A DNA stretch of 64,000 nucleotides, from NCBI GenBank assembly GCA_964035545.1, contig OZ037772.1, positions 11,964,818 to 12,028,817 of the forward strand. Direction: 5' to 3'. Numbering within the stretch: position 1 is the stretch's first letter; each line of letters opens with the position of its first letter. A program made the translations under genes and the position numbers. This DNA comes from Bugula neritina (lineage: Eukaryota > Animalia > Bryozoa). Shown here in pieces: positions 16,701-36,353 of the stretch. The notes below the pieces were generated by a model. The model searched no databases and was not told where the DNA came from. It saw nothing but the letters and a program-made list of their open reading frames with translations.

Positions 16701-19700
16701 CTCTGTATTTCTGCAGATTTCATTTTCGATCTTTCTGCAGCTGACATTATCTTTGTACGTTTGAAAGCCCTTTTATTGGTTGATTGATCAATTGATTTAT
16801 TTATTTATTTATTGTATATCACAAACATGAAAACATGTTGTGAAATTCAATGTACTGGCTATAATAAGTAGAAATGAACAAAATTTGAGGAAAAAACAGA
16901 TTTCTGTTGAATTACTTAAAATAGAAGATCATTCAAATTATTTACTATTACAAGGTGTCGTAAAAACTATCTGTGCCCCAGGTTCTTTTGCAGATTTTAT
17001 TTTTCTCTAGCTACATTCTTCGCTACCTGTTATTCTTTGTGTACTTCTGCAGATTTCATTTTCTCTGTATTTCTGCAGATTGTATTTTCTGTGTATTCCT
17101 GCAGATGGAGATGGAAGCTGCCAGAGAGGATGAACTGGCGGACTTCTGGTTGGCTCAGCTCCAAAGACTTCTGGACAGAAAACCAAAGTCTCAAATTGAC
17201 CGGGTAACCTACAGTATAGTACTTACTATATAGTGTTGAGTTAACTTACAGTACTTACTATATAGTGTTGAGTTAACTTACAGTATAGTACTTACCTACT
17301 ATACAGTGTTGAGTTAACTTACAGTATAGTACTTACTATATAGTGTTGAGTTAACTTACAGTATAGTACTTACTATATAATGTTGAGTTAACTTACAGTA
17401 TAGTACTCACTATATAGTGTTGAGTTAACTTACAGTATAGTACTCACTATATAGTGTTGGGTTAACTTACAGTATAGTACTCACTATATAGTGTTGAGTT
17501 AACTTACAGTACAGTACTCACTATATAGTGTTGGGTTAACTTACAGTATAGTACTCACTATGCATCATTAAAGTAACTTACAAGATACTGTTGCCATATG
17601 TACTTTAAAATAGAATTTAAATAATAAATTGTCCCGCAGTAGTTAACACTGAGTATATTTAGTTAGTGGTTATAGTATTCATTAGTAGCCAGTAGTTATA
17701 CTACTTAATTGTAGTTATACTAGTAACTAGCAGTTATACTAGATGCTAGTAGTTACACTGAATTTGAACTACTGGTGGTTATACTAATGACTAGTAACTA
17801 TTAGTTATACTAATGACTAGTAACTATTAGTTATACTAGAAACTAATCAGTGAGATGATACCGTATCCTGTATGATAAACTCTGTTGACCTCTACTTGAT
17901 CTTCAGGAGTCCAACTTAGAGATCGCTGTGAAAGATATTCTAAACATGTCGGAGGCAGATGACTACATCTCAAGATTTGCTCAGCACAAAGTATCGATTG
18001 AGACTCTCAAGACTTTATCAGGCGACGACTTGAGACGTGTAAGTTATACTTGTGTTTACTTGAAGTATACAAGTTATACTCGTGTTTATTATTTTAATGC
18101 AAAGTCATTCAGTCTAAATAACTGTTCACAGTATCAATATTTTGTGAAGAAGTCTGTCTGTCTGTCTGTAGATTGGAGTGTATGAAGTCGGAGTCAGAAA
18201 AGCTATACTAAAGAACACAAAGATATACCTGGAGAAGATAGGGGAGCTGTCAGACCAGCCACATCAAGTAGGTGTTAAGGGCCTTGGGCTATTTTATGGG
18301 AGCAATTCTGTGGTCAGCAGTTAATAAATCATTTTCTTTCAAATGTTTTCATAACTTCCTTAAGTCGAAAAGAATTCACTGAAGGAATGTTTTAATTTTT
18401 GCTGTTGAAGGTTAATTTTTTATTAAAGCTAAAAAATTTAAATTGCTGTCACAAAATATGCTTGTCAATTGAATTCTATTTTGTCTACAAATCTGAAAAA
18501 GAATTCTGTAACCTTTAATATCATATTGTTATTCATTTTATGTTGTATAATCAATCGTACAGGCTGAATGGAGCACACTGTGAACTGATAAGTTTCACCA
18601 GTGTATTCATCTAAATCATCTTCTATATAATTTCTTCCTATATATTGCCTTGATTGTAGAAATACTTTTATTCTGTTGGGCATAACCTTCTTTTCTGCAA
18701 TGCGCAAGATGGCCTTTATCATATCTGTGCTGTTTGCTAATTTTAGGAGACAGAGGAAGCGGGTAAAACACTGCCTAGTGCACCTTCCAGCAGTGAGTTG
18801 GGTGCTAAGGCTAAGCCTAGTGCTACCAGAGCACCTGCTCAAGTGCTGACACATGTCACCACCGAGTGTGTCATATGTATGGATAAACAGGTGAGTCAGG
18901 TACTTGTATGTGCACCGTGACACTGCATATGACTGTATTTTGGCACATGTCTCTGGCATCTATAAGTTGACCAGTGAGCCAGGTGCTTTTTCAACTGTCA
19001 TCATGACTTTAAGATGGCAATATTAAGAAATGACACAGCATGGAGTTACAGTATTTTCGGCATTATGACTTTGACACTCATATAAATGTATAGATTGCAT
19101 TTCCTCAAAGGTGTAGAGTGTGGACTAAAATGTTATTTATGAGTGAAAAATTATGTAGTACTGAGGGATTTTCTAGTGTTTTAACAGATTTTGTCGGTCT
19201 TGCTATGTCCTTGCTATAGCAAGACATGGAAATCTTGCAGAAAACTTCCAAATGTTTTGTGGCTTGACTTTGTATAGTAGTTATATGAGTGTCAATATCT
19301 GACATGTTTTGACAAGTGCTTGCATGACTTATAGTGTAGTGACATGTGACAACCTGTGACAATGTATTCAGGTTGTTGTAATTACATTTCGTGAAACCAC
19401 TTTTGTTGCCCTTCATGTTTAGTTATAATATTTATCTTAGTAGGGGATTTTTTACCCAACGCACACCTTATGTTGTATTTCATGGAAAGGTTAATGTTGT
19501 AAATTGTAACAATTTTCTTAAATACAGATATTGTGGTTTAAAATACATCAGCTCTTCAAGGATACAAGTAAATGGAGTACATACCATCACTTTGTGTATC
19601 ACGTGACGTATCTAATATGTTTTACAGACGGGAATTGTGTTCCTCCCCTGTGGGCATGTCTGTACTTGTCTGGATTGCTCTCAACCTCTCTACCACTGTC

Positions 19701-19747
19701 CAATGTGTCGAGCTGAGATATCACAGAAGATTATTCTGGAGTCGTAG
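7748..19747 (+). CDS. LRSAM1: E3 ubiquitin ligase LRSAM1 (LRR - coiled coil - SAM - PSAP - RING), 19 coding exons, 743 aa
   Basis: Phase-consistent exons: 7748-7801, 8119-8217, 8619-8765, 9101-9185, 9586-9798, 10332-10450, 11150-11224, 12240-12392, 13556-13643, 14025-14121, 14967-15137, 15433-15520, 16148-16303, 16542-16637, 17105-17203, 17907-18038, 18172-18267, 18747-18890, 19628-19747 (2232 nt). Diagnostic segments: [32 protein letters not shown], LRRs, KFLCREAGIEYVAPS, DFWLAQLQRLLDRKP, SAM (YISRFAQHKVSIETLKTLSGDDLRRIGV), PSAP, and RING CVICMDKQTGIVFLPCGHVCTCLDCSQPLYHCPMCR. Confidence 0.95.
9913..10323. repeat. Long inverted repeat with 203-bp arms and a 5-nt loop in LRSAM1 intron 5
   Basis: 9913-10115 is the reverse complement of 10121-10323; no mismatches seen by eye. 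The loop is AGCTA. Confidence 0.95.
12151..12239 (+). repeat. Six 14-15 bp tandem copies of the LRSAM1 exon 8 splice acceptor
   Basis: Unit CCGTTCTATTTATAG; TAG ends at 12165, 12180, 12195, 12209, 12224 and 12239. Confidence 0.9.
14285..14950. repeat. 32-bp minisatellite, about 20 copies, in LRSAM1 intron 10
   Basis: Unit GACACAGCCTACAGGTGTGTTGTCTAG(TAGAT/CATAT), decaying into GTGTAGTGACACAG just before the acceptor at 14966. Confidence 0.95.
16043..16140. repeat. 17-bp minisatellite, about 6 copies, abutting the LRSAM1 exon 13 acceptor
   Basis: Unit CTCTA(T/C)TGAACTGTGAC. Confidence 0.9.
16301..16458 (+). repeat. 25-bp tandem repeat of the LRSAM1 exon 13 splice donor
   Basis: Unit CAGGTGAGTG(T/C)(T/G)TTGACACTGTGAA; GT at 16304 (used), 16329, 16354, 16379, 16404, 16429 and 16454. 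Confidence 0.9.
17204..17562. repeat. 37-bp minisatellite, about 10 copies, starting at the LRSAM1 exon 15 donor
   Basis: Unit GTTAACTTACAGTATAGTACT(T/C)ACTATATAGTGTTGA. The first copy is the real donor GTAACCTACAGTATAGT... Confidence 0.92.
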
Positions 19748-20904
19748 AGGTCCATGGACACCCTCAGTGCAAGCATATTTATCTTTTGTGCAATTTTACT
19801 AAAATTTTTGTGATAGTTTATTTCGTGCCAGGAATTTTCTCGCCTAAAGATGGGCGTGGGGTAGAGAAGTAAATCAGCTAATGGAATGTCTCAACATTTT
19901 GCTGACTCTGAATTCAACATGTACCTGATTTGGTTCTATTTATTATGTGCAGGAACTAGGGAAGCTCTATCTACCCCCATCTTCTGTTGCACTTGGATTC
20001 AGTTTGATGGCTATTTTCATTAATACTTTCTATAAACTTTCAGCTCACCAATTACTTTGCTAAAAAATTAATTTTATGAAAAAGTCACTGAACTCAAGTT
20101 TGTAAAAGTTGAAAGACTAGAGGATTTCCCGTCTTCTCTATTTTAATTATTTTATTTTTGTATATCATAGCTAAACTACTTTATCAATATTAACCTCTTA
20201 TTTAATCTTTTAATTGTCTCTATTACGTAAAGCTATAATAATAATATATATATATATATTTTCCTGTAGCTTTTGTTATTTTACCATTAAATTGTGTTAT
20301 ATACTGTTAAGTTGTTTTATATAATGACTATATATAATAATATGACAATATAAAAAATATGGTATTAAAACTTGCATGATGTGATAGCAAATATTGTATC
20401 ATTTAAAGTATTTGAATACTGTGTTGTGGTATTGCTATATTGATGTCTATATTTTTTACTATTTTATCAAACAATAAATATTACAAGAGCTCATGTTTCA
20501 AAGTTCCTTAAAGATGTATAAAGTGTATTGCAGTAAACTGTGAGCATGTGTGGGGGTTCATATATATAACATTTTATTTTAGTAAGTTAATCAGATGTGT
20601 AAAAGTTGTTTCCTTAAAAGGGGATTAGAGTAGAACGAAGGCAAGCTGAGGAGGAGACCTTAAGTTAAAAATTATTGCTACGTACTAATCATTTCACTAG
20701 AAACACATTTTTACAGAATAATCCCAAGTTCTGCACATAGGCATCTAGCAAGTAGCCCTGACTGAAAGATCTTGTCTACTGAAGGTTAATACTGAATGAG
20801 AAAGAAAGTAAAAACTCCAGCTGCTGTGATGTTGACAATTTCTCTGCTGATGATGCTCTAAGGCTACTTGTAGCCTCAGTTCCAAGACCACCCTCTGCTG
20901 TAAC

Positions 20905-23900
20905 TCACACATTCTTTAACTCTTCATCTGTATGCACACTTTTCTCTCTTCCTCTAACTTTGTCCTCTACGGAGGTCGTGTGGTCTTGCTCAAAGTCTAC
21001 ATACCCGTAGTCATTAGAGCTCCTTGTACGACTCACAGACAAGTTGAGTCTCTTGCTCACTGTGGGCTGCCGGCCGATGTCGCTGTCGTCTTCTGAGGTC
21101 ACAATGTCCTCTGTACTGGCGTAGTAGTAATCATCCATAGACTTGTTACCTGGGGGTGTAGCTCCACTTTCCACGGCATCCGATGTGGGGCGGTGTGGCA
21201 GAGGCCCGTATCTAGCAGACCTGAAAGAACAAATGATCATTATAAGTTTTGAAAAGTTGTATTTTTATTTCTTTTTACAACCAACTGCAAGAATTTAGAA
21301 TACGGCATAAATTGTATCTCTCAAACAGAAAGACATTTGAAAACATCAATATATAGCAGTACAATGCTATATTATAAAAGTTTTAAAGTTATAAAGAAAC
21401 TCAGATGACTGTATCATATAGTGCCAGTATTATTCAATATAAGGGACTATTAAAATATTCATGGGGTTTACTTTGTGTTTAGATATAGTCTCTAGGCTTG
21501 TCAACCAGTAAGTGTTATTATCACTAAATATGATTTATTAGCATAATTCATGCAGGAATTTAAGCTCTCAGGCCCAACATGGTGTCATACTTAGTATAAT
21601 ATATAAGTTAAAATCTCACTGATTGTAAAGGAATGGTATAGAAACAGCAGCATACTTCAAAAACCATTTCAGTTTAAGTTGCATTTAATTGAGTTCAAGA
21701 AATGTAATTTGTCCTGCGGAACTTGTAATAGCAAAGTACTGCAACTCAGTGTGACTCATTTTCTTATTAAAACATGAAGTTTAGCTGATAAATGCCAATC
21801 TCAAAATGTAATTGTTGTTGTTTATTTAAAGGTTGTTTGTTTTGTATTTATTGTTTGTTAAAATGCTAAATTAGATTCATAAATATTAATCAGCAGTTGT
21901 CTTACTTTTTGCTCATCTGTTTGTCCTCGCCAAGGTCAAGGTGAGTATAACTGCTATCTGTAGCCTTGGTTTCTAACATCTGGTAGGGGTCCTCAACCTC
22001 TGTGTACTCATCATAAGGGAGAGAGTAGGCTTCCAAGTCTAAACATCAGCAACATATCAGACTTCAAAGGATAAAATAAAAGACTTTAAATTAATTTTTA
22101 CTCTGAGATAAGTTAAATTTGACAATTTTGTATCACCAACTCCTTTAAACTTTCAAATGTGCGAAATGGAGAAATTTGTTGTGAAATTTTATTAGCATAA
22201 TACTTCATATTATATCATTGCATCATCCTCAGTTTTATGAGATCATAAAGCCCTGTGTTTGTGCCAAACCACTGTTTATGGTTTAGTACAGGAATTTTAC
22301 TGGACCAGGTTAAGGCGTGGTGCCTCTAGTATGATGTCAAGATTCAAGGATCAATTGAGATAAATAGATCAATTTGATCAAAGGGAAGTGAGAATAGACA
22401 TAAATCACTGGCTTTCCTTGCATCAGAGTCAATGCAGAGCCTTGAGTGCTAAGCCAATCACAAGGCCTTTGAGTGTAGAAAGCCAGCAGGTGATTGGCTA
22501 ATTAAGGAAAGACGGCAGTATTATTGTGAAATCAGCATATTTTTTGTAGCCATCTTTAGTTTCAATTATTTAATTTTAATCATAATTGACATTGTATTTA
22601 TTGATTTTATCGTTTGCAGATGTATGTAGGCATTATGTTGTTAAATGACTATAAGTAATTATAATGTTGGAACCTTGTTTCCAATTGCATTATATTCTGG
22701 ATATATAATTAATTTTGTAGTTAATACTATTGTTGTCAAGGCATATATTACTGTTGATGCACATACTAATTATGGTTAATTACATATGTCCATGTATATC
22801 ACCATATATTAAAAGCTACAGAGCTTGACCATAGCATTATATAGCTAAATAGCTATAGCCAGTATGGAATGTGAATAAACCCAACATGGACACACTTAGG
22901 ATTTGACTCACTGGTGAGTAACACCTGTCTAGTATATAACTTCAACAATTCTATATAATATGCCATTCATTTAATCTGTCCAGCTGTCCAGCAGCTTGCC
23001 CTTTACACATAATGATGTGTCATTACTAAACTACATGCTGCTGCATAATAAGATAAAGGAAATAAATAACTACAGAAAGGACTGGGGGGATAGATGCAAA
23101 TAACTTAAGTCTATTCTCAGTGATTATATCCATAAATCTGTATTAAGCAGACGTGTGTCATGTTGGGAATATATCTTATCAATATATGACTCTCAACTCA
23201 AAGTGAATAAATCCAGGCAGCTTCAGAATTATATCTCTATATGATAACAGTTAATTCTGCAGAGTTTGTTTGGTTGAATGCAGCTATTGATAGTATTAGC
23301 ATCAAAGTGACTATGTAGGGTGAAATGACAACCATAGCTCTCTTGTCTGCTGTAAGACATTAAAAGCTAATCTGTATGATTGATAGATCAATGGTGTGGA
23401 ACTTATAGTTTAACTAATAGCTGGTCTCTATAGTAGATATGCAAGTGTAAACTGTAAATAACATGTTTGTGAAATAGTTTTGCAATATTAAAAAGCCCTT
23501 AAAAGATAAGTTATATGAGCGAGATTGGGTGAGGATGTTGACTAAAATATTTAAAACAGACAAGTTAACCTTTTTAGGGATATAGTTTGTTCTCAAATTT
23601 TATAAAACCTGCTGGCATATATAAGATTACATCAAATAGACCAAATTGAGTTAAAAAATTCTTATCAACTCTACAATGTCAGCTGACACAAAAATTGGAA
23701 ACTGAAGCAGTAAAGGGTTTGATTTGGTACTGCAACCACTATATTGAAACATAGTGTTGGTTGAAATATTTTTTGTCTTGTTGAGAAATTCCTGTCAAGT
23801 CAGTCGTATCCACAGATTACCCCGAGTTTTGTTGAGTTATTGATACCTCTTCGGGAAAATTAATTTTACACTATATACAGTTTTCTCTCATTGTTTATAT

Positions 23901-26900
23901 AACAAAACAAATATGCAACATACCTTTACTGTCTTTTTGGTTATAGATGCCATGCTTGCTGATGGAGTCGTCTCTCGCCGCTATGCCTGAATTTTTAGTC
24001 TGATTTTGTCTGCATATGAATAAAATTAAGATATTGAATTAAAGCATTTGCTCAAACAGCGTAACAATTTGTTCATTTCTAAATAATTATGTAACTGCCG
24101 ATTAAAATTAAAAGACTATATAGTTGAAAATTGAAATTAAAATTTTATTCTGAACTGATAACCAGTCTAGCCATAAATTCAGTCTAACTACAAAATAAAA
24201 TTTAATGGTTTCAAAAATCTATGAGGAAGAAAGTAGCCATGATAAAGGAAATGTGTAATTATTATGAGAAACTTGCTTTGGGGACTAAATAAAGTTAGCC
24301 AACTTCTATATTTGTCAGTTTTAGTAGAAAACTAAATAATTAGCATTGCAAATTTAGAGCTAATGAGAAAACGATCATTAATGAATAATAAGTGAATCTT
24401 GTAGATTTTGGTGCATTTGGACATTATAGAAACTTTAGCCTAACGATTTCTTTTATTCATCAATAACATGTATTATATCAATTACAGATTTAGCTGATCA
24501 AAATCTACATCTAGTGAGCTCTAAAACATACCTGGATTTGCTGGCTCTCTTGTACAGAAGGCAAGATAGTGATATGATGACAGCTATGAGAATTACTCCT
24601 ACAGTTGCCACGGAAACGGCAATAACTACAGTTGTGGAGGGAGAGCTGCCACTGTTGCTAGTGCTGCCACTGAGGTCTTCCTCTGAAGAAGAATCAAACT
24701 CGCCTGTATTGTAGCAGTAGACATGGTTAGAGATCAATGAAAGGTCAGTGTAAACTATAGTTCAGCCAGCATTAGACATCAGTGCAATTATAACTGTAGT
24801 TTAAGCTATCAACAGTTCATTTTTAGAAACACAATTAATTTAATTTAGCATTAGTTTGACTACCATATAGTTATATGAAGTTCATCAGTGAATAGATTTG
24901 AAATAAAATTCTTTGCAAACTGTAATCGCTAATACCACTAGCTAACTTTAAACCATTACAGGCCCTTATTTCAAGGATTTCGATCTCTCGTATTATTCGA
25001 TGCTTAAATGTAAACACTTCACAATTTAATATACACAATTGATGCCAATTATTATTTTGCTTCATAGAGATAGTTCCAACATCTTGTCACGTTTTACACA
25101 TCGCAACGCATGACGCAAAGTCATCAGATAGTTTCAATACATCCTGCATACACTCTGACAAACTGTGCATGAAATTACCTTTAAAAAATTTTCAGAACAT
25201 TTGGCATCCTCCTGACATATCTGTCATATATTATACGCAGATGAAAAAGATTAAATTTGATATTCCTAACACCCAACGCTTTATATAAAAAATCTTTTGG
25301 GAAGTAGTTTTCCTATTACAGCTTTTAAACTCAATAAAAGTTTAATAAAATGAAATTGCTAACAGGTAAAAGTTTTATGAAGTAGATTTAGTTAAACACT
25401 AACACTTACCCATAGAGTTAGAAAAGTTGAGAGTATTACAGCTTTCTTACAACAACCTCTTCACGTAAGAACAGAGTTGAAATGTGTGAAACAGTATACC
25501 CACCTCATTAATAAGATATTCTCAATAATAAGGAAAACTATTTACATTTTTGTTTATGCACAAGGGTTTTAGGAACTAAGTAATTAATAAATTTACATCT
25601 AATTTTATATAAATAATTTTCACGGTTCCAAATAGTTTCCTTATGCGTGAATATACAAACATATACTAGGTAAAACTGTCTAATTTTAGAAAATTTTAAG
25701 CATATCTTTTTTCAAGAAAATGATCAGAAAACAACTCTGTGGTCTAAACTCTAAACGCAATACAACTAAATGTGATTTAATATTTCAACTCAACAACCTA
25801 GCATAGTTGTGATTGTGAATTTAAATGTATCAACATGTTTCGAAGTGACAATGACCAAAATAGGTGGAAAAGTTAACAGGATTATGACGATTAAAATAAA
25901 TTGTGTGTAAAAAATCAAATTGGTTGCCAACTCATAGAAGTAAGTGTGTTACAGAAAGTGTGCTGTGAGCCAACTTTCACACAGACCAGGCGACCCTCTG
26001 GCTGCATATTATGATACGTAGTAACTTACTTGTAGTTGTTGGGGGCTTCATAGGTTTCATGGGGGGTTTCGGGAATGGTACCGGGGTCGGGCGATCTGCA
26101 GCATAATATGAGGTTGTGAATTTTTGAATTTAAATATTTTCTTACAAAACTGTCTATTTATAATTTCTTCAGCCTGTTACCTCTTCAAAAGTATCTCTAA
26201 ACTGTAGCAGCTTTTCTAATCAAGAGTTGAAATAAAATTACATTATTGTATATAATGTTTATAATCTTGTTTTTAAAATTGGTATTTCTTTTTAAAGAAA
26301 CCGCTGAACTACAGATTTAGCTGAGGAGTGTCTTCTTACTAATTCTGACTATACTCATTATTAGGCAATTAATAATTAATTAACTGGTTTATATTAGTTT
26401 CACAGCAGTTCCTTGAGCCAACAAAATAGGTTTAGTGACTTAATAGATATTATTAGATAATTAGTTCCAAATTATTGCCTTAGTAATACATGTCCAGTGT
26501 GCAGTAGAATAAGACCTGAGCAGTTTCCGTGTTGCCATTTCAAGTGTCATAGTTTACGTACTTCTGACACTAGGGAGGTATAGACCTGCTAGCAGCTACA
26601 TGTCAGACTATGTATCAGACTATGTATCAGCCTTAGTGTCAGGTGATGTGTCAGACTATGTATCAGCCTTAGTATCAGACTATGTATAAGACTGAGTGAG
26701 TTATTACTTGTGAGTTACAATAAAAACATGCATTGTATTCAGAAAACTATTGCAAACTTCCTATACACTAAACATTTATTTCAAACTTTCACCTAAGAAA
26801 ACTATGATCACTTGCAGTATTTTTCAAGCCAACAGCCTACATAAGGTCAGTCAGCCAGCTTAGTAACTCAGCATAGGTTAGCAAGGGTTCCGTTTCACAA

Positions 26901-28989
26901 TGTTACATGACATGCTAAATAACAAACTATAGCTAGAGATCATTGAGTCGCTGAATCGTTACTCACCTAGCACGTAGTTGAGCAGTTTCATCTCAGAGCT
27001 GTTACCACCAATCAGCACAGCCCCAGACTTGTACTTCATTAGAGAGAGGGGTTGGTAGAGGTTACACTTATCAATGCTGGTGAGATCTTCATCGTCGCTG
27101 CTGCAGATAGAGGAAACGGTGTCCGACCTCGTGTTGACAACTCTCAGTCGGTTGTTCAACGTATCCGCCACGAGGATCACGTATCTCGCTATCTTTATTA
27201 TTTCAAAGGGGCTGTTCACTTGCGCCCAGTTCAGTCCGCCATCTTTGAAACCAACTGTTGTTGACTCGATCAATGGTGTGATGATGTTTGTTGCTGGATT
27301 CACTCTTATGAATCTAGAGGTAGTTGTGACGTAGAGTTGTTTATGCCGATTGTCATAGTATATTCCGTGTGGACTGTCATCTAGTGTGATCATCGTGCTA
27401 GCTAGCTCTCCTGCTAGTAATCTGATGGCATTGTTACCTGAGTCTGACAAATAGATTGAGCCATCCTGGTTGTTCAGTGTGACTTGGCGGGGCGTGCTGA
27501 ACCGAGCCGTGAGCAGCTTTCCATCTACGTAGCCACTAGAGTTACAACTGCCAGCTGCCAGAGAAGTGCTGCCGGAAGGCACATCAAACCACTTGAGGCA
27601 GTGACTGAGTGAGTCCACTAGGAGGATGGTTGTGTCGTTAACCTGACTGAAGCCTGTGATCTGTGTGAACTCTCCAGGAGCAGTGAGGGCTATCTGGTCT
27701 CCTGACAAATCCTCGTACTTGATGAGACGAGAACCGTCTGCTATGTAGTAGATGTCAACTTCTGCGTCTGACTCCTCCATATGCCACACTCTCTCCTCAA
27801 TCTCTGGTTGAGTGAAGTCCGTCACAACCACAAACTTTATTCTAAAAATTTTTTGTGTTTGAGAATCAAAAGTCTCAGAAGAGGCAAAATTAATTATTAA
27901 AAAATATTTGCTGCTTTCCAAAGTAAGATTTAAGGAAACATAATTAACACTCTGAAAAAAGTGAATCGAGTTAATTTTGAAATAAAATGTAACTAGTCAA
28001 TAGGTTGAACTTGCATGAGTGTGAAAGTTTGTTTCATTTTCAGCTTACAGCTACAGCATTCTTTATTCTTCAATATTTAATTCAGATCATATGTAGATGT
28101 ATAGGAAGAGCATGTGAGTAATAGTTGTATTGTTAAGAAATGTCTTTGCATGATTTTTGATTTCCAACAAAAAGGAAACTGAAGTTAGGTGAATCATTTT
28201 AAGTTTTATTACTCATAAAATCATTATATTATATTATATTACAATGCATCATGGTCGCATTAATCTGCACTTATGTTATGTTATCCTATATTATAATAAT
28301 ATATTATAATATATTATATTATGTTGTTATCCTATATTATATCATATTATAATATTATATTATACCATATTATAATATTATATTATATCATATTAAAATA
28401 TCATTTCTGTTTTATAACTTTACATTTACTTACTCATTCACAGCTTTGCTGTACACTGCAAACTGTTCTAAATCTTCATCGCTTGCTACAAGAGTTATCT
28501 TCACTACGATTATCTAAAATTTTCATATAAAAGGCATAAATTTTATATGGACTCATAAAACCAGGCTCCTAGTTGAATGACATAATATAATAGGTTTCTT
28601 ACTTAATAGTATTAACTTAGATTTAGATAATTATATTATAAATTATGCGCTTCAGTTTAGACTGGTAAATGCAGAAGCAATGATATGATAATAATATTGA
28701 TTTGTTATACGTGGTATTGATATTCAAAAACAAAACCGGTGTATATTTTAGATGAATATTTAACTTGCTAATGTCTCAACACCACTGACAGTTTAGGGTT
28801 GTCTTCTCATATCGAGTATTCTACATTCTCAACTTTCCTAGTAGCTGCTACTACTACTAATACTACTGCTGCTACTACTATACTACTATTACTGCTGCTA
28901 CTGCTACTGCTGCTGCTGCTGAATCATGCAGCAAAGTAGAACATTGACCAGAAGGTACTCACAGCTGCTACATAACAGCAGACAATCAT
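20905..28989 (-). CDS. Type I membrane receptor: signal peptide, NHL beta-propeller, Pro/Thr/Ser stalk, TM, Tyr-motif cytoplasmic tail with an ITAM; 8 exons, 584 aa
   Basis: Phase-consistent minus-strand exons: 28989-28963, 28513-28434, 27841-26967, 26095-26030, 24703-24532, 24009-23924, 22038-21906, 21220-20905 (1755 nt). N-terminus MIVCCYVAAIIVVKITLVA. NHL blades: GYVDGKLLTARFSTPRQV...IYLSDSGNNAIR and GFKDGGLNWAQVNSPFEI...ILVADTLNNRLR. TM VVIAVSVATVGVILIAVIISLSCLLY followed by KRASK. Tail includes EDPYQMLETKATDSSYTHL. Confidence 0.82.
26600..26695. repeat. Degenerate 12-bp intronic tandem repeat
   Basis: TGTATCAGACTA / TGTATCAGCCTTAG units. Confidence 0.75.
28840..28921. repeat. (CTA/CTG)n trinucleotide microsatellite
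   Basis: ctactactact...gctgctgctg just inside the first coding intron of the NHL receptor gene. Confidence 0.85.
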
Positions 28990-34376: not shown

Positions 34377-36353
34377 ATGTATGCTATTAGTTTGGTGTTT
34401 GTTTTAGAGATCCTACTTTTATTTCTCCATGGCACTTCTGTGTTATGTAAGTATATAACTATTATTTTTATAAACATGTTGAAATGATATAAATTCATAT
34501 AGAACAGTTATCTGCTTAGAATAATGATGTTTCTTATAAAACATATAACGTTTTAAGTTTAAAAATAATATAAGTGAAAATATGAAAACCAAAAACATAA
34601 AAATGTTCTTGCATGCAACACACAGGAACGCATATGAGAGAATAATGGCTAGATACTTTATTATAAGCATATGAGATACAATAATGAGCGAGTTTTGGCC
34701 GTTTGACACTCCATAAATGCATGCATGTATATTTATAATGCAACTTTAATATATTACTTAAAAACATGATAAAGATAATATTTAATTATAAATGAATAAT
34801 AAATTTAAATGCGTATTTAGTACATGAAGTTTTACTGCTAAAATGTAAAGTTTTGGTTGCATGAGCAATTGCTCTAATATGTACATTATCAAATATATAT
34901 TTTAGCCCCAGTACAGGCACAGCACTCAAGCAAACTGTACGTGCTCACTGGTAACCGTGGAGCTTATTCAAGAGGAGGAAAACAAAAAGAGACGAAATGC
35001 TTCTCCGATAGAAAGATCGCAGTGAATGGAATACGGTCACCAATAGAGTGTCAAATTCAGTGCATGAACTACGCAGACGATGGGTTTACTTGTTCCTGTT
35101 TCGAGTTTTGGCAGAGTTCCAGGAGGTGTGATCTGTACAGACAGATGAGTAGCCAAGGTTCTCCAGAGGTGAATGGCACCTTGGATCACTTTCAACAGTC
35201 ATCTTCTTTGACAAGAAAAACAACCACAGCAACAATATCTGAAGTAGTAATGGCTGCAACCGACGTAACAACGGACAGACCGACACCCGTTACACACCTG
35301 CTATCAACAACTACAACCACGCCAACAGAAGTAACAAGTGAAACTATTGCTATGACAGTAAAGTCAACGATAACTACAGTTGCGCTCTCAAAAATTGTTG
35401 CTCCAACAACAACATCTACAACTACATCAACAACATCTACACCTACATCAGCAACTCTAACCCCTCCAACAACCTCTACAGCTACATCAACAACTGAAAA
35501 TAAACGAACAGCTACCTCAAATGTTGTCACCGGACTCCCATCTACTACTATTTTGTCAACCGTACCTAGAGCTATACAAACCGTACCTAGCAGACAAACA
35601 TTCTCAACAAATTTGTCAAATGCCACAGTTAAGCCAACGACTACAAACGACCTAACAACCAGTACAGCTGAACAGACTATTAAAACCACAACCACAAGCG
35701 AATTAGCAACAGCTGTAGCTGTACCAAGCACAACAGACAGACATACAACTACAGACATTAAAACAATTACAGAAACTGAGCTAACAATTGGCACAGCCAA
35801 GTCTACAATTGAAACTACAAATAGTGCTGCAAACTCTGAAGCAAAGGACACACCTACAACTACAGAAAAAGAAACAACCACAATGAAAGAAATGAAAACC
35901 AAAACAGCTAAACCAGCATTGATGAAAACTAGTACAATAACAACAAGCAAATTAACAACAGCTGTGCCAACAACCGACATGCATACAACTACAGAAACAA
36001 CCACTACCACAACCAAAATAAATGAACCACAACCCACTACAGCTAAACTAGAAACTAAAGTCACACCAACAACCAAAATAACAACAACTGTGGTAAATGC
36101 CAAAACAACTGCAGACATACGTGCAACTACAGAAAAAGAAACAACCACAAGAAATGAACCACAAACTACTACAGCAAAACCAACAGCTAAAGTCACACCA
36201 ACAGCTGAAAGGAAAGCTACGCCTACTGTTACTGCTGATACACCAACCACTGCTCTTAGTCTAAAGAGTTCTCTTGAGGAATATTCTAATCTTTGCAAGG
36301 TTCAAGGACATCTCTGCAATTTGGGAATGAATCCTAATTACCAGGTTGCATAA
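34377..36353 (+). CDS. Secreted PAN/apple-domain protein with a Thr-rich mucin-like tail (paralog 1), 2 exons, about 505 aa
   Basis: Exon 34377-34446 encodes a signal peptide (MYAISLVFVLEILLLFLHGTSVL) and joins in phase 1 to exon 34906-36353. PAN-type cysteine pattern: KCFSDRK...SPIECQIQCMNY...FTCSCFEFWQSSRRCDLY. About 350 aa of Thr/Ser/Pro-rich sequence follows, with no TM. Further 3' splicing cannot be excluded. Confidence 0.8.

Follow-up and report, generated by a model that had tools for sequence, protein, structure and literature searches.

A conserved gene of Bugula neritina predicted to encode a type I membrane protein that combines an NHL propeller ectodomain and an ITAM-type tail motif

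Genetic organization of the locus

The DNA region analyzed here (the window) is a 64,000-nt stretch of contig OZ037772.1 of the bryozoan Bugula neritina (assembly GCA_964035545.1, positions 11,964,818 to 12,028,817). On its minus strand, between positions 28989 and 20905, lies a gene of eight exons which an earlier note, made from the nucleotide sequence alone, had proposed to encode an immune or recognition receptor combining an NHL beta-propeller with an immunoreceptor tyrosine-based activation motif (ITAM). As described below, this is an intact, single-copy gene under purifying selection, which encodes a predicted type I membrane protein of 584 aa, both the gene and its architecture being highly probable. 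A role of this protein as an ITAM-type signalling receptor is proposed tentatively.

The eight exons, all on the minus strand, are bordered by canonical GT-AG introns and, when joined in phase, form an open frame of 1755 nt (584 codons and a stop codon) with no internal stops. Exon 1 (28963..28989) contains the ATG codon and encodes the first 9 residues of the leader, ending at a GTGAGT donor. Exon 2 (28434..28513; phase 0 in, phase 2 out) encodes the rest of the leader, which is likely a signal peptide, probably cleaved near LVA/SDE, and the start of the mature chain. The entire six-bladed NHL propeller, with three N-glycosylation sequons and four cysteines invariant in its family, is encoded by exon 3 (26967..27841; 875 nt). 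It is followed by (i) a Pro/Thr-rich stalk of 22 residues (exon 4, 26030..26095, in phase, with AG/GT borders), (ii) an acidic Ser-rich stalk, the transmembrane helix (approximately 24555–24629) and the stop-transfer sequence YKRASKS (exon 5, 24532..24703), (iii) a juxtamembrane cytoplasmic segment (exon 6, 23924..24009, in phase), (iv) the segment containing the ITAM, together with AYSLP, YDEY and EYTEV (exon 7, 21906..22038), and (v) the C-terminal portion of the tail, which includes YGPL, DDYYYAS and DYGYVDF, followed by the stop codon (exon 8, 20905..21220).

A hydropathy scan of the 584-aa model revealed only two hydrophobic stretches: the leader (residues 1–19) and a helix at approximately residues 375–399, directly followed by YKRASKS, whose Kyte-Doolittle mean over 19 residues reaches 3.1. 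Upstream of the propeller there are just 35 residues (the hydrophobic leader), whereas downstream of it come another five exons, one of which encodes the transmembrane helix. The cytoplasmic tail of 185 residues is rich in Tyr (13 residues), Asp/Glu (35) and Ser/Thr (38) and has no enzymatic domain; in the Pfam search no domain besides NHL was found in the protein. Searches and fold prediction were made exon by exon, and the joined 584-aa model was used for the open-frame check, the hydropathy scan and the shuffling described below. The exon coordinates, phases and protein layout given in the earlier note (leader, NHL propeller on an 875-nt exon, Pro/Thr stalk, one transmembrane helix and a non-enzymatic tail) were found exactly as claimed.

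The NHL propeller ectodomain

Exon 3 was matched by the Pfam NHL model (PF01436) with an E-value of 1.2e-6 (28.7 bits, cut-off 20), one repeat being detected, and its neighbours in the protein atlas are all NHL clusters. The structure prediction advised in the earlier note, performed for the propeller exon with AlphaFold2 and an alignment of paralogs, yielded a confident model of a six-bladed NHL propeller with 24 strands (predicted local distance difference test, pLDDT, 90.4; predicted template modelling score, pTM, 0.89). The top Foldseek matches among PDB structures were TRIM71, the lumenal domain of SOQ1, NHLRC2, PknD and the Pizza6 designs derived from PknD (E about 1e-12, template modelling scores of 0.7–0.8), together with a teneurin-like protein. 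Each of the four cysteines is retained in all 13 paralogs of alignment A2; these residues and the N-glycosylation sequons fit an extracellular location of the propeller, as given by the predicted topology.

When the 345-aa open frame containing exon 3 was used as the query (length window to 604 aa), only one close protein, P0001, and NHL proteins of bacterial type were returned. A bacterial origin of the propeller was considered and set aside, since the bacterial-type sequences form a single clade but the arbitrary root of the tree supports no conclusion.

Tyrosine motifs of the cytoplasmic tail

The exact ITAM reported in the earlier note is present in exon 7: EDP-YQML-ETKATDSS-YTHL is encoded at positions 21938–21985, with YQML-x8-YTHL corresponding to residues 454–469 and Glu/Asp at −3/−2. 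According to the predicted topology, the motif is cytoplasmic and follows the single internal hydrophobic helix at a distance of 55 residues. It also fits the stricter ITAM consensus Yxx[I/L]x(6-9)Yxx[L/I] (PMC9546547), with the upstream acidic residues present as well. The other tyrosine motifs listed previously (EYTEV, DDYYYAS and NDYGYVDF) were all confirmed in the tail, which in addition contains a third YxxL, YGPL (21199–21210), located 14 residues after YTHL, across the junction of exons 7 and 8.

The frequency with which such motifs arise by chance was estimated from 100,000 shuffles of the 185-aa tail with its composition kept. The strict pattern [DE]xxYxx[LI]-x6-8-Yxx[LI] occurred in 0.22% of the shuffles and the loose pattern Yxx[LI]-x6-12-Yxx[LI] in 2.8%. 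The second half of the motif, SSYTHL, does fit the immunoreceptor tyrosine-based inhibition motif (ITIM), defined as [ILVS]xYxx[ILV] (PMC9546547), as had been pointed out; however, this match is uninformative, because the ITIM pattern arises in 35% of the shuffles. The spacing YTHL-x14-YGPL was found in 0.18% of the shuffles, this being a relaxed fit chosen after the fact. A genome-wide scan with the DNA pattern for YxxF-x14-YAxL was uninformative (287 matches versus 121 in the control, among the matches listed).

Conservation in a sister lineage

P0001, which is 95% identical to exon 3, led to a 10-kb contig (L033) from a sister lineage that spans exons 1–6. A search with exon 8 among 1.84 billion protein representatives identified P0023 and, through it, contig L034 from the same sample, spanning exons 7 and 8. 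On these two contigs all acceptors and donors are kept and the frame is open, the single indel being an in-frame one of 3 nt, located in the leader. The identity of the exons is 91–97%, compared with 54–84% for the introns, which are ridden with gaps. Exon 1 of the ortholog retains the ATG codon and the donor and carries the 3-nt insertion, while exon 2 retains its AG/GT borders and is 91% identical at the nucleotide level (67–74% in the adjoining introns). In exon 4 only one residue differs, exon 5 is 97% identical in nucleotide sequence, and the AG/GT borders of exon 6 are kept.

The ratio of nonsynonymous to synonymous substitution rates (dN/dS), calculated by the Nei-Gojobori method, is about 0.11 overall, 0.12 for exons 1–6 (with a dS of 0.26) and 0.078 for the propeller exon. 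The predicted splicing is supported by the ortholog, in which splice sites and frame are conserved and exons exceed introns in identity, and the conserved splice sites and frame, together with the low dN/dS, are the signature expected of a functional coding gene with the eight-exon structure predicted here.

The tail is conserved as well. All 43 residues encoded by exon 7 are identical in L034, and its AG/GT borders are kept; the two sequences differ by 5 synonymous and 0 nonsynonymous substitutions (0 of about 105 nonsynonymous sites changed versus 5 of about 24 synonymous ones; Fisher estimate, p about 1.5e-4). In exon 8, 97 of 104 residues are identical, with 14 synonymous and 7 nonsynonymous differences (dN/dS about 0.13) and no tyrosine lost, so that all 13 tail tyrosines are retained in the sister lineage. 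The conservation of the ITAM in an ortholog, which the earlier note had named as a test, was hereby confirmed: its tyrosines, its spacing and indeed its whole sequence are unchanged.

Comparison of the two lineages also revealed conserved DNA outside the exons. A 210-nt stretch at 19616–19825, which is separated from the stop codon by approximately 1.1 kb in the 3′ direction, shows 95–100% identity to L034, compared with about 81% in its flanks. It is present in a single copy in the genome, without a match in Rfam or a folding signal (z 0.28), and may be a 3′ untranslated region or a regulatory element. Four intronic islands of 60–110 nt (25533–25642, 25850–25929, 23191–23299 and 22520–22628) are at least 95% identical between the lineages. 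They were considered as hidden exons, which was ruled out by their many stop codons, and they are candidate regulatory elements.

Sequence variation and phase of the propeller exon

The earlier note had listed allorecognition among the possible roles, and had proposed measuring polymorphism and dN/dS of the propeller exon. Neither measure supports allorecognition or a fast-evolving head. Besides the low dN/dS given above, a second DNA data set (run X1) differs from the window at 3 positions in 5.9 kb, none of which falls within the 875-nt propeller exon; in the available data the head is not polymorphic. The only coding variant in X1 (position 24583, G>A on the plus strand) results in A390V inside the transmembrane helix. 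The variant residue is the one found at this position in the sister lineage, and may therefore represent a shared or ancestral polymorphism.

The idea that the ligand-binding head can be swapped as an exon is likewise weakened, because the phases of exon 3 are unequal (2 at the 5′ end and 1 at the 3′ end). The family to which it belongs nevertheless places the propeller exon before differing downstream modules.

The family of propeller exons

At least 134 copies of the propeller exon (i.e. at least 133 paralogs) were identified in the genome, nearly all of them intact open frames of about 300 aa. They are clustered on C2 (24–33 Mb), C7 (13.3–14.7 Mb) and C8 (7.6–8.0 and 8.7 Mb), with a few copies on C3, C4, C5 and C9. 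All 30 copies inspected retain four cysteines and end at one Gly codon within a phase-1 donor (G|GT in 29 and G|GC in 1), and in L008, L013, L014 and L023 the propeller is followed by a Ser/Thr stalk and a transmembrane exon. The window gene shares these features: a propeller on a single exon, the phase-1 G|GT donor, the four cysteines, the stalk and one transmembrane helix.

Maximum-likelihood analysis placed the window gene together with its ortholog on a long branch of their own, which groups only loosely (94/91) with the C8 array and one copy from C4. The propeller is 22–30% identical to those of its paralogs, with 32% as the value for the best one. The C8 array lies on the same chromosome and has in common with the window gene the single-exon six-bladed propeller, the phase-1 donor, the four cysteines, the stalk and the transmembrane helix, the layout of propeller, stalk and transmembrane helix being confirmed here for two members of the array. 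The window gene differs from it in being solitary, located 4 Mb away, deeply diverged and under strong purifying selection, with a tail for which no paralog was detected.

Searches for relatives of the tail gave mostly negative results. No paralog of exon 7 was found in the genome at E ≤ 10, nor was any found of exon 8. Among the 1.84 billion representatives the only real relative of exon 8 is P0023, which originates from Bugula-type samples; a second match, P0024, was rejected as an unrelated repetitive protein sharing only HRPTSD. Metagenome scans with exon 8 and with a paralog propeller yielded no matches. No tails were recognizable within the 1.5-kb flanks of the paralogs, a profile search returned relatives only on contigs of up to 3.4 kb, and a regular-expression scan of the flanks for ITAM-like patterns produced only AT-rich noise. 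As judged from these sequence comparisons, the window gene belongs to a lineage-expanded family, within which it stands alone as an old, conserved member equipped with a tail of its own.

Members of the large C7/C2 clade contain conserved, Cys-framed exons after the propeller exon (CPxxNIT...C.YYV.V; RRLxFKxxYxVxCD; DCxMS...TVYWPTD), examples of which, besides their relatives, are located on the minus strand at L007:1037–1255, L027:1093–1290, L012:750–995 and L004:364–585. These exons have no match in Pfam, and the clade appears to represent an undescribed multi-module ectodomain architecture. An initial by-eye assignment of the modules as HYR-like was dropped, as it found no support in Pfam.

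Candidate SH2 proteins in the genome

Two loci encoding potential partners of phosphorylated tyrosine motifs were identified. The first (C7:14371513–14377601) contains, on one strand, two distinct SH2 domains followed by a Tyr-kinase domain, the SH2 matches (model positions 19–66 and 2–52) being placed 2–5 kb upstream of those to the kinase. The second (C3:23740128–23748502) has the order SH2-SH2-phosphatase, a putative SHP/Corkscrew-like layout, as assigned by domain order.

The C7 locus is situated between two clusters of NHL-propeller paralogs (14.05–14.21 and 14.59–14.67 Mb), which may be a coincidence.

Possible function and alternative explanations

The explanation we favour, to which we assign a probability of roughly 0.4, is that the gene encodes an ITAM-type signalling receptor. 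In such a receptor the outward-facing propeller would bind a conserved, non-polymorphic extracellular ligand. Clustering driven by the ligand would allow a Src-type kinase to phosphorylate both tyrosines of EDP-YQML-x8-YTHL, and the doubly phosphorylated motif would then dock the tandem SH2 domains of a Syk/Shark-like kinase, such as that putatively encoded on C7 at 14.37 Mb. Docking would result in an activating response, for example cell activation or uptake. Additional SH2 docking sites would be provided by the remaining acidic tyrosines that are conserved (YDEY, EYTEV, YGPL, DYYY and DYGYVDF).

Several observations weigh against this explanation. The conservation described above spans one modest divergence only (dS about 0.25), and constraint acts on the entire tail, exon 8 included; for these two reasons the ITAM is not singled out statistically. 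The family gives the motif no independent support, because no detected paralog shares the tail. The motif was picked from a very large scan of genes, and its looser form arises in 2.8% of the shuffled tails. The assignment of the C7 locus as Syk/ZAP-70/Shark-like is based on domain order only. The sole sequencing run covering the locus, X1, is DNA (intron share 0.99, an 11-kb genomic contig and no splice joints). Finally, 5 of the 13 tail tyrosines (in YTEV, YQML, YTHL, YGPL and YVDF) fit the sorting signal YxxPhi.

The last point is the basis of a rather unlikely alternative: an endocytic or scavenger-type receptor, whose propeller captures a ligand for uptake and whose YxxL/V/F sequences are recognized as YxxPhi signals by adaptor-protein complexes and not by SH2 domains. 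YxxPhi motifs bind the mu2 subunit of AP-2, the tail of PAM directs endocytosis, and passage through endosomes is a property of YWTD propeller receptors as well as of membrane PAM. The ectodomain, moreover, is conserved and not diversified, as would be expected with a housekeeping ligand. However, the tail is long, acidic and unusually Tyr-rich, with acidic residues before most tyrosines, a pattern more characteristic of kinase substrates than of a single short sorting signal, and chance seldom produces the exact x8 spacing preceded by an acidic residue. It should be added that the endocytic and ITAM roles are not mutually exclusive.

It is also unlikely that the protein is a phosphotyrosine scaffold or an inhibitory receptor, acting in adhesion/guidance or inhibition through partners with single SH2 domains or through phosphatases (SHP-like enzymes via SSYTHL; adaptors of the Src, Crk and PI3K type), and not as a Syk-coupled activator. 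The fit of SSYTHL to the ITIM definition, the SH2-SH2-phosphatase locus (C3:23.74 Mb) and the rarity of the YTHL-x14-YGPL spacing are in its favour, but the first of these carries little information and the last is a relaxed match recognized after the fact.

An improbable explanation is that the tyrosine motif is coincidental, the protein being either a surface glycoprotein with a structural or adhesive role or a propeller enzyme anchored in the membrane, and its tail being conserved for other reasons. Apart from the size of the scan and the 2.8% frequency of the looser pattern, it draws on the conservation of the entire tail and not of the motif alone. Six-bladed propellers include lactonases and lyases, and weak echoes of such enzymes were observed (a sub-threshold Pfam match to Arylesterase, E 0.16, and bacterial relatives labelled as lactonase). 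Against this, the family-invariant positions are the Gly, Asp, Pro, Arg and Cys residues of the NHL frame, with no His/metal cluster, and the best fold matches are binding propellers. In addition, the 13 tyrosines include three in YxxL, compared with about one expected from composition.

Although bryozoans form colonies, and although the propeller family is large and its copies are clustered, a polymorphic allorecognition determinant of the colony is very improbable, given that the gene is solitary, has a one-to-one ortholog, and shows a propeller dN/dS and X1 variation as low as those reported above.

Comparison with known receptors

With regard to the ITAM-type receptor proposed here, the closest functional analogues would be Draper and Alr, the ectodomain fold being new. 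Draper/CED-1/MEGF10 is described as an invertebrate ITAM-bearing engulfment receptor that uses Src and Shark (PMC4503800; Ziegenfuss 2008 as cited in PMC9546547). Like the window gene product it is an invertebrate type I receptor with the ITAM in its own tail, and the expected partners are Src-type and Syk/Shark-type kinases in both cases. Draper differs in having an EMI/EGF ectodomain and NPxY in the tail, in place of an NHL propeller and a tail without NPxY, and there is no sequence relationship between them. The Alr proteins of Hydractinia are surface receptors of a colonial marine invertebrate, with Ig-like/Fn3-like ectodomains and divergent tails, some of which contain an ITAM or ITIM; Alr1/2 are polymorphic allodeterminants (PMC9546547). 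The support for the ITAM is of the same kind in Alr and in the window gene (a motif, and the presence of Syk/Shark and SHP homologs, putative for the latter), although the window gene differs in its NHL propeller and in showing no polymorphism in the available data.

The motif grammar of the tail (an acidic residue, YxxL, an 8-residue spacer and YxxL) is that of vertebrate FcR gamma, DAP12, CD3 and Fc gamma RIIA. In vertebrates, however, most ITAMs are found not on the Ig or C-type lectin receptors themselves but on small, separate adaptor chains acting behind them. The exon 8 search among the 1.84 billion representatives revealed no homology of the tail to vertebrate ITAM proteins.

In overall layout the closest analogue is the PknD sensor of M. 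tuberculosis (1RWI/1RWL), in which an extracellular six-bladed NHL propeller is connected by one transmembrane helix to a cytoplasmic signalling part. PknD, however, is bacterial, has its own kinase domain and shows the opposite order along the chain. Extracellular NHL propellers are also present in teneurins and, as the lyase domain, in PAM, but PAM is an enzyme. The TRIM-NHL proteins, which provide the best structural matches of the propeller, are intracellular, unlike the window gene product. Two assignments were rejected on the basis of architecture: (i) TRIM-NHL E3 ligases (TRIM71/LIN-41, Brat and Thin) contain RING, B-box and coiled-coil regions before a C-terminal propeller, whereas here the propeller directly follows the leader and precedes the stalk, transmembrane helix and tail; (ii) teneurins are type II giants with EGF repeats, a YD-repeat shell and Tox-GHH, whereas the present protein is of type I, 584 aa long and without any other Pfam domain.

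Full-text literature searches for NHL with ITAM, Bugula with NHL, NHL-repeat expansions and bryozoan immune receptors returned nothing relevant, and the statement of the earlier note that no receptor joining NHL, a transmembrane helix and an ITAM has been described therefore stands within these searches. ITAM signalling is central to vertebrate immunity. To our knowledge, its documented invertebrate cases comprise few receptors (Draper, and Alr as candidates), all with Ig- or EGF-type heads, and we know of essentially no molecular immunology in Bryozoa. A conserved receptor in which an ITAM is combined with an NHL propeller would represent a new pairing of head and tail, and would be an entry point to signalling, and possibly immunity, in bryozoans. 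A broader and doubtful extension is that bryozoans possess a large germline repertoire of surface receptors whose outward-facing heads are NHL propellers and not Ig, lectin or LRR domains, the window gene encoding the conserved, solitary member that is Syk/Shark-coupled and activating. The ITAM module would then have been linked to a new ectodomain fold in an independent event, in a phylum from which we know of no described immune receptors. Should sorting turn out to be the role of the motif, the gene would retain its value as a conserved reference member of an undescribed family with over 130 propeller exons.

Other observations

Two introns of the gene contain simple repeats. In intron 3 (26600–26700) there is a short tandem repeat with units like CTGATACATAGTCTGA, which can be aligned with the ortholog in several registers, and in intron 1 (28860–28925) an imperfect AGC/AGT trinucleotide run. 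Approximately 6 kb upstream of the gene, a 470-aa open frame (34941–36353, plus strand) gave only a sub-threshold echo of the PAN domain (E 0.0087).

Elsewhere in the genome, exons for Tyr-phosphatase domains are arranged in dense arrays (C1 3.96–4.23, C6 8.02–8.43, C3 7.6–8.1 and C5 1.3–2.3 Mb), which possibly represent expansions of receptor-type phosphatases. On many small, unplaced contigs (e.g. C10, C15, C33, C37, C66, C170, C176, C201 and C304) kinase and phosphatase matches contain 5–18 in-frame TAA/TAG codons and almost no TGA, a pattern that fits the presence in the assembly of admixed DNA from an organism using a ciliate-type genetic code.

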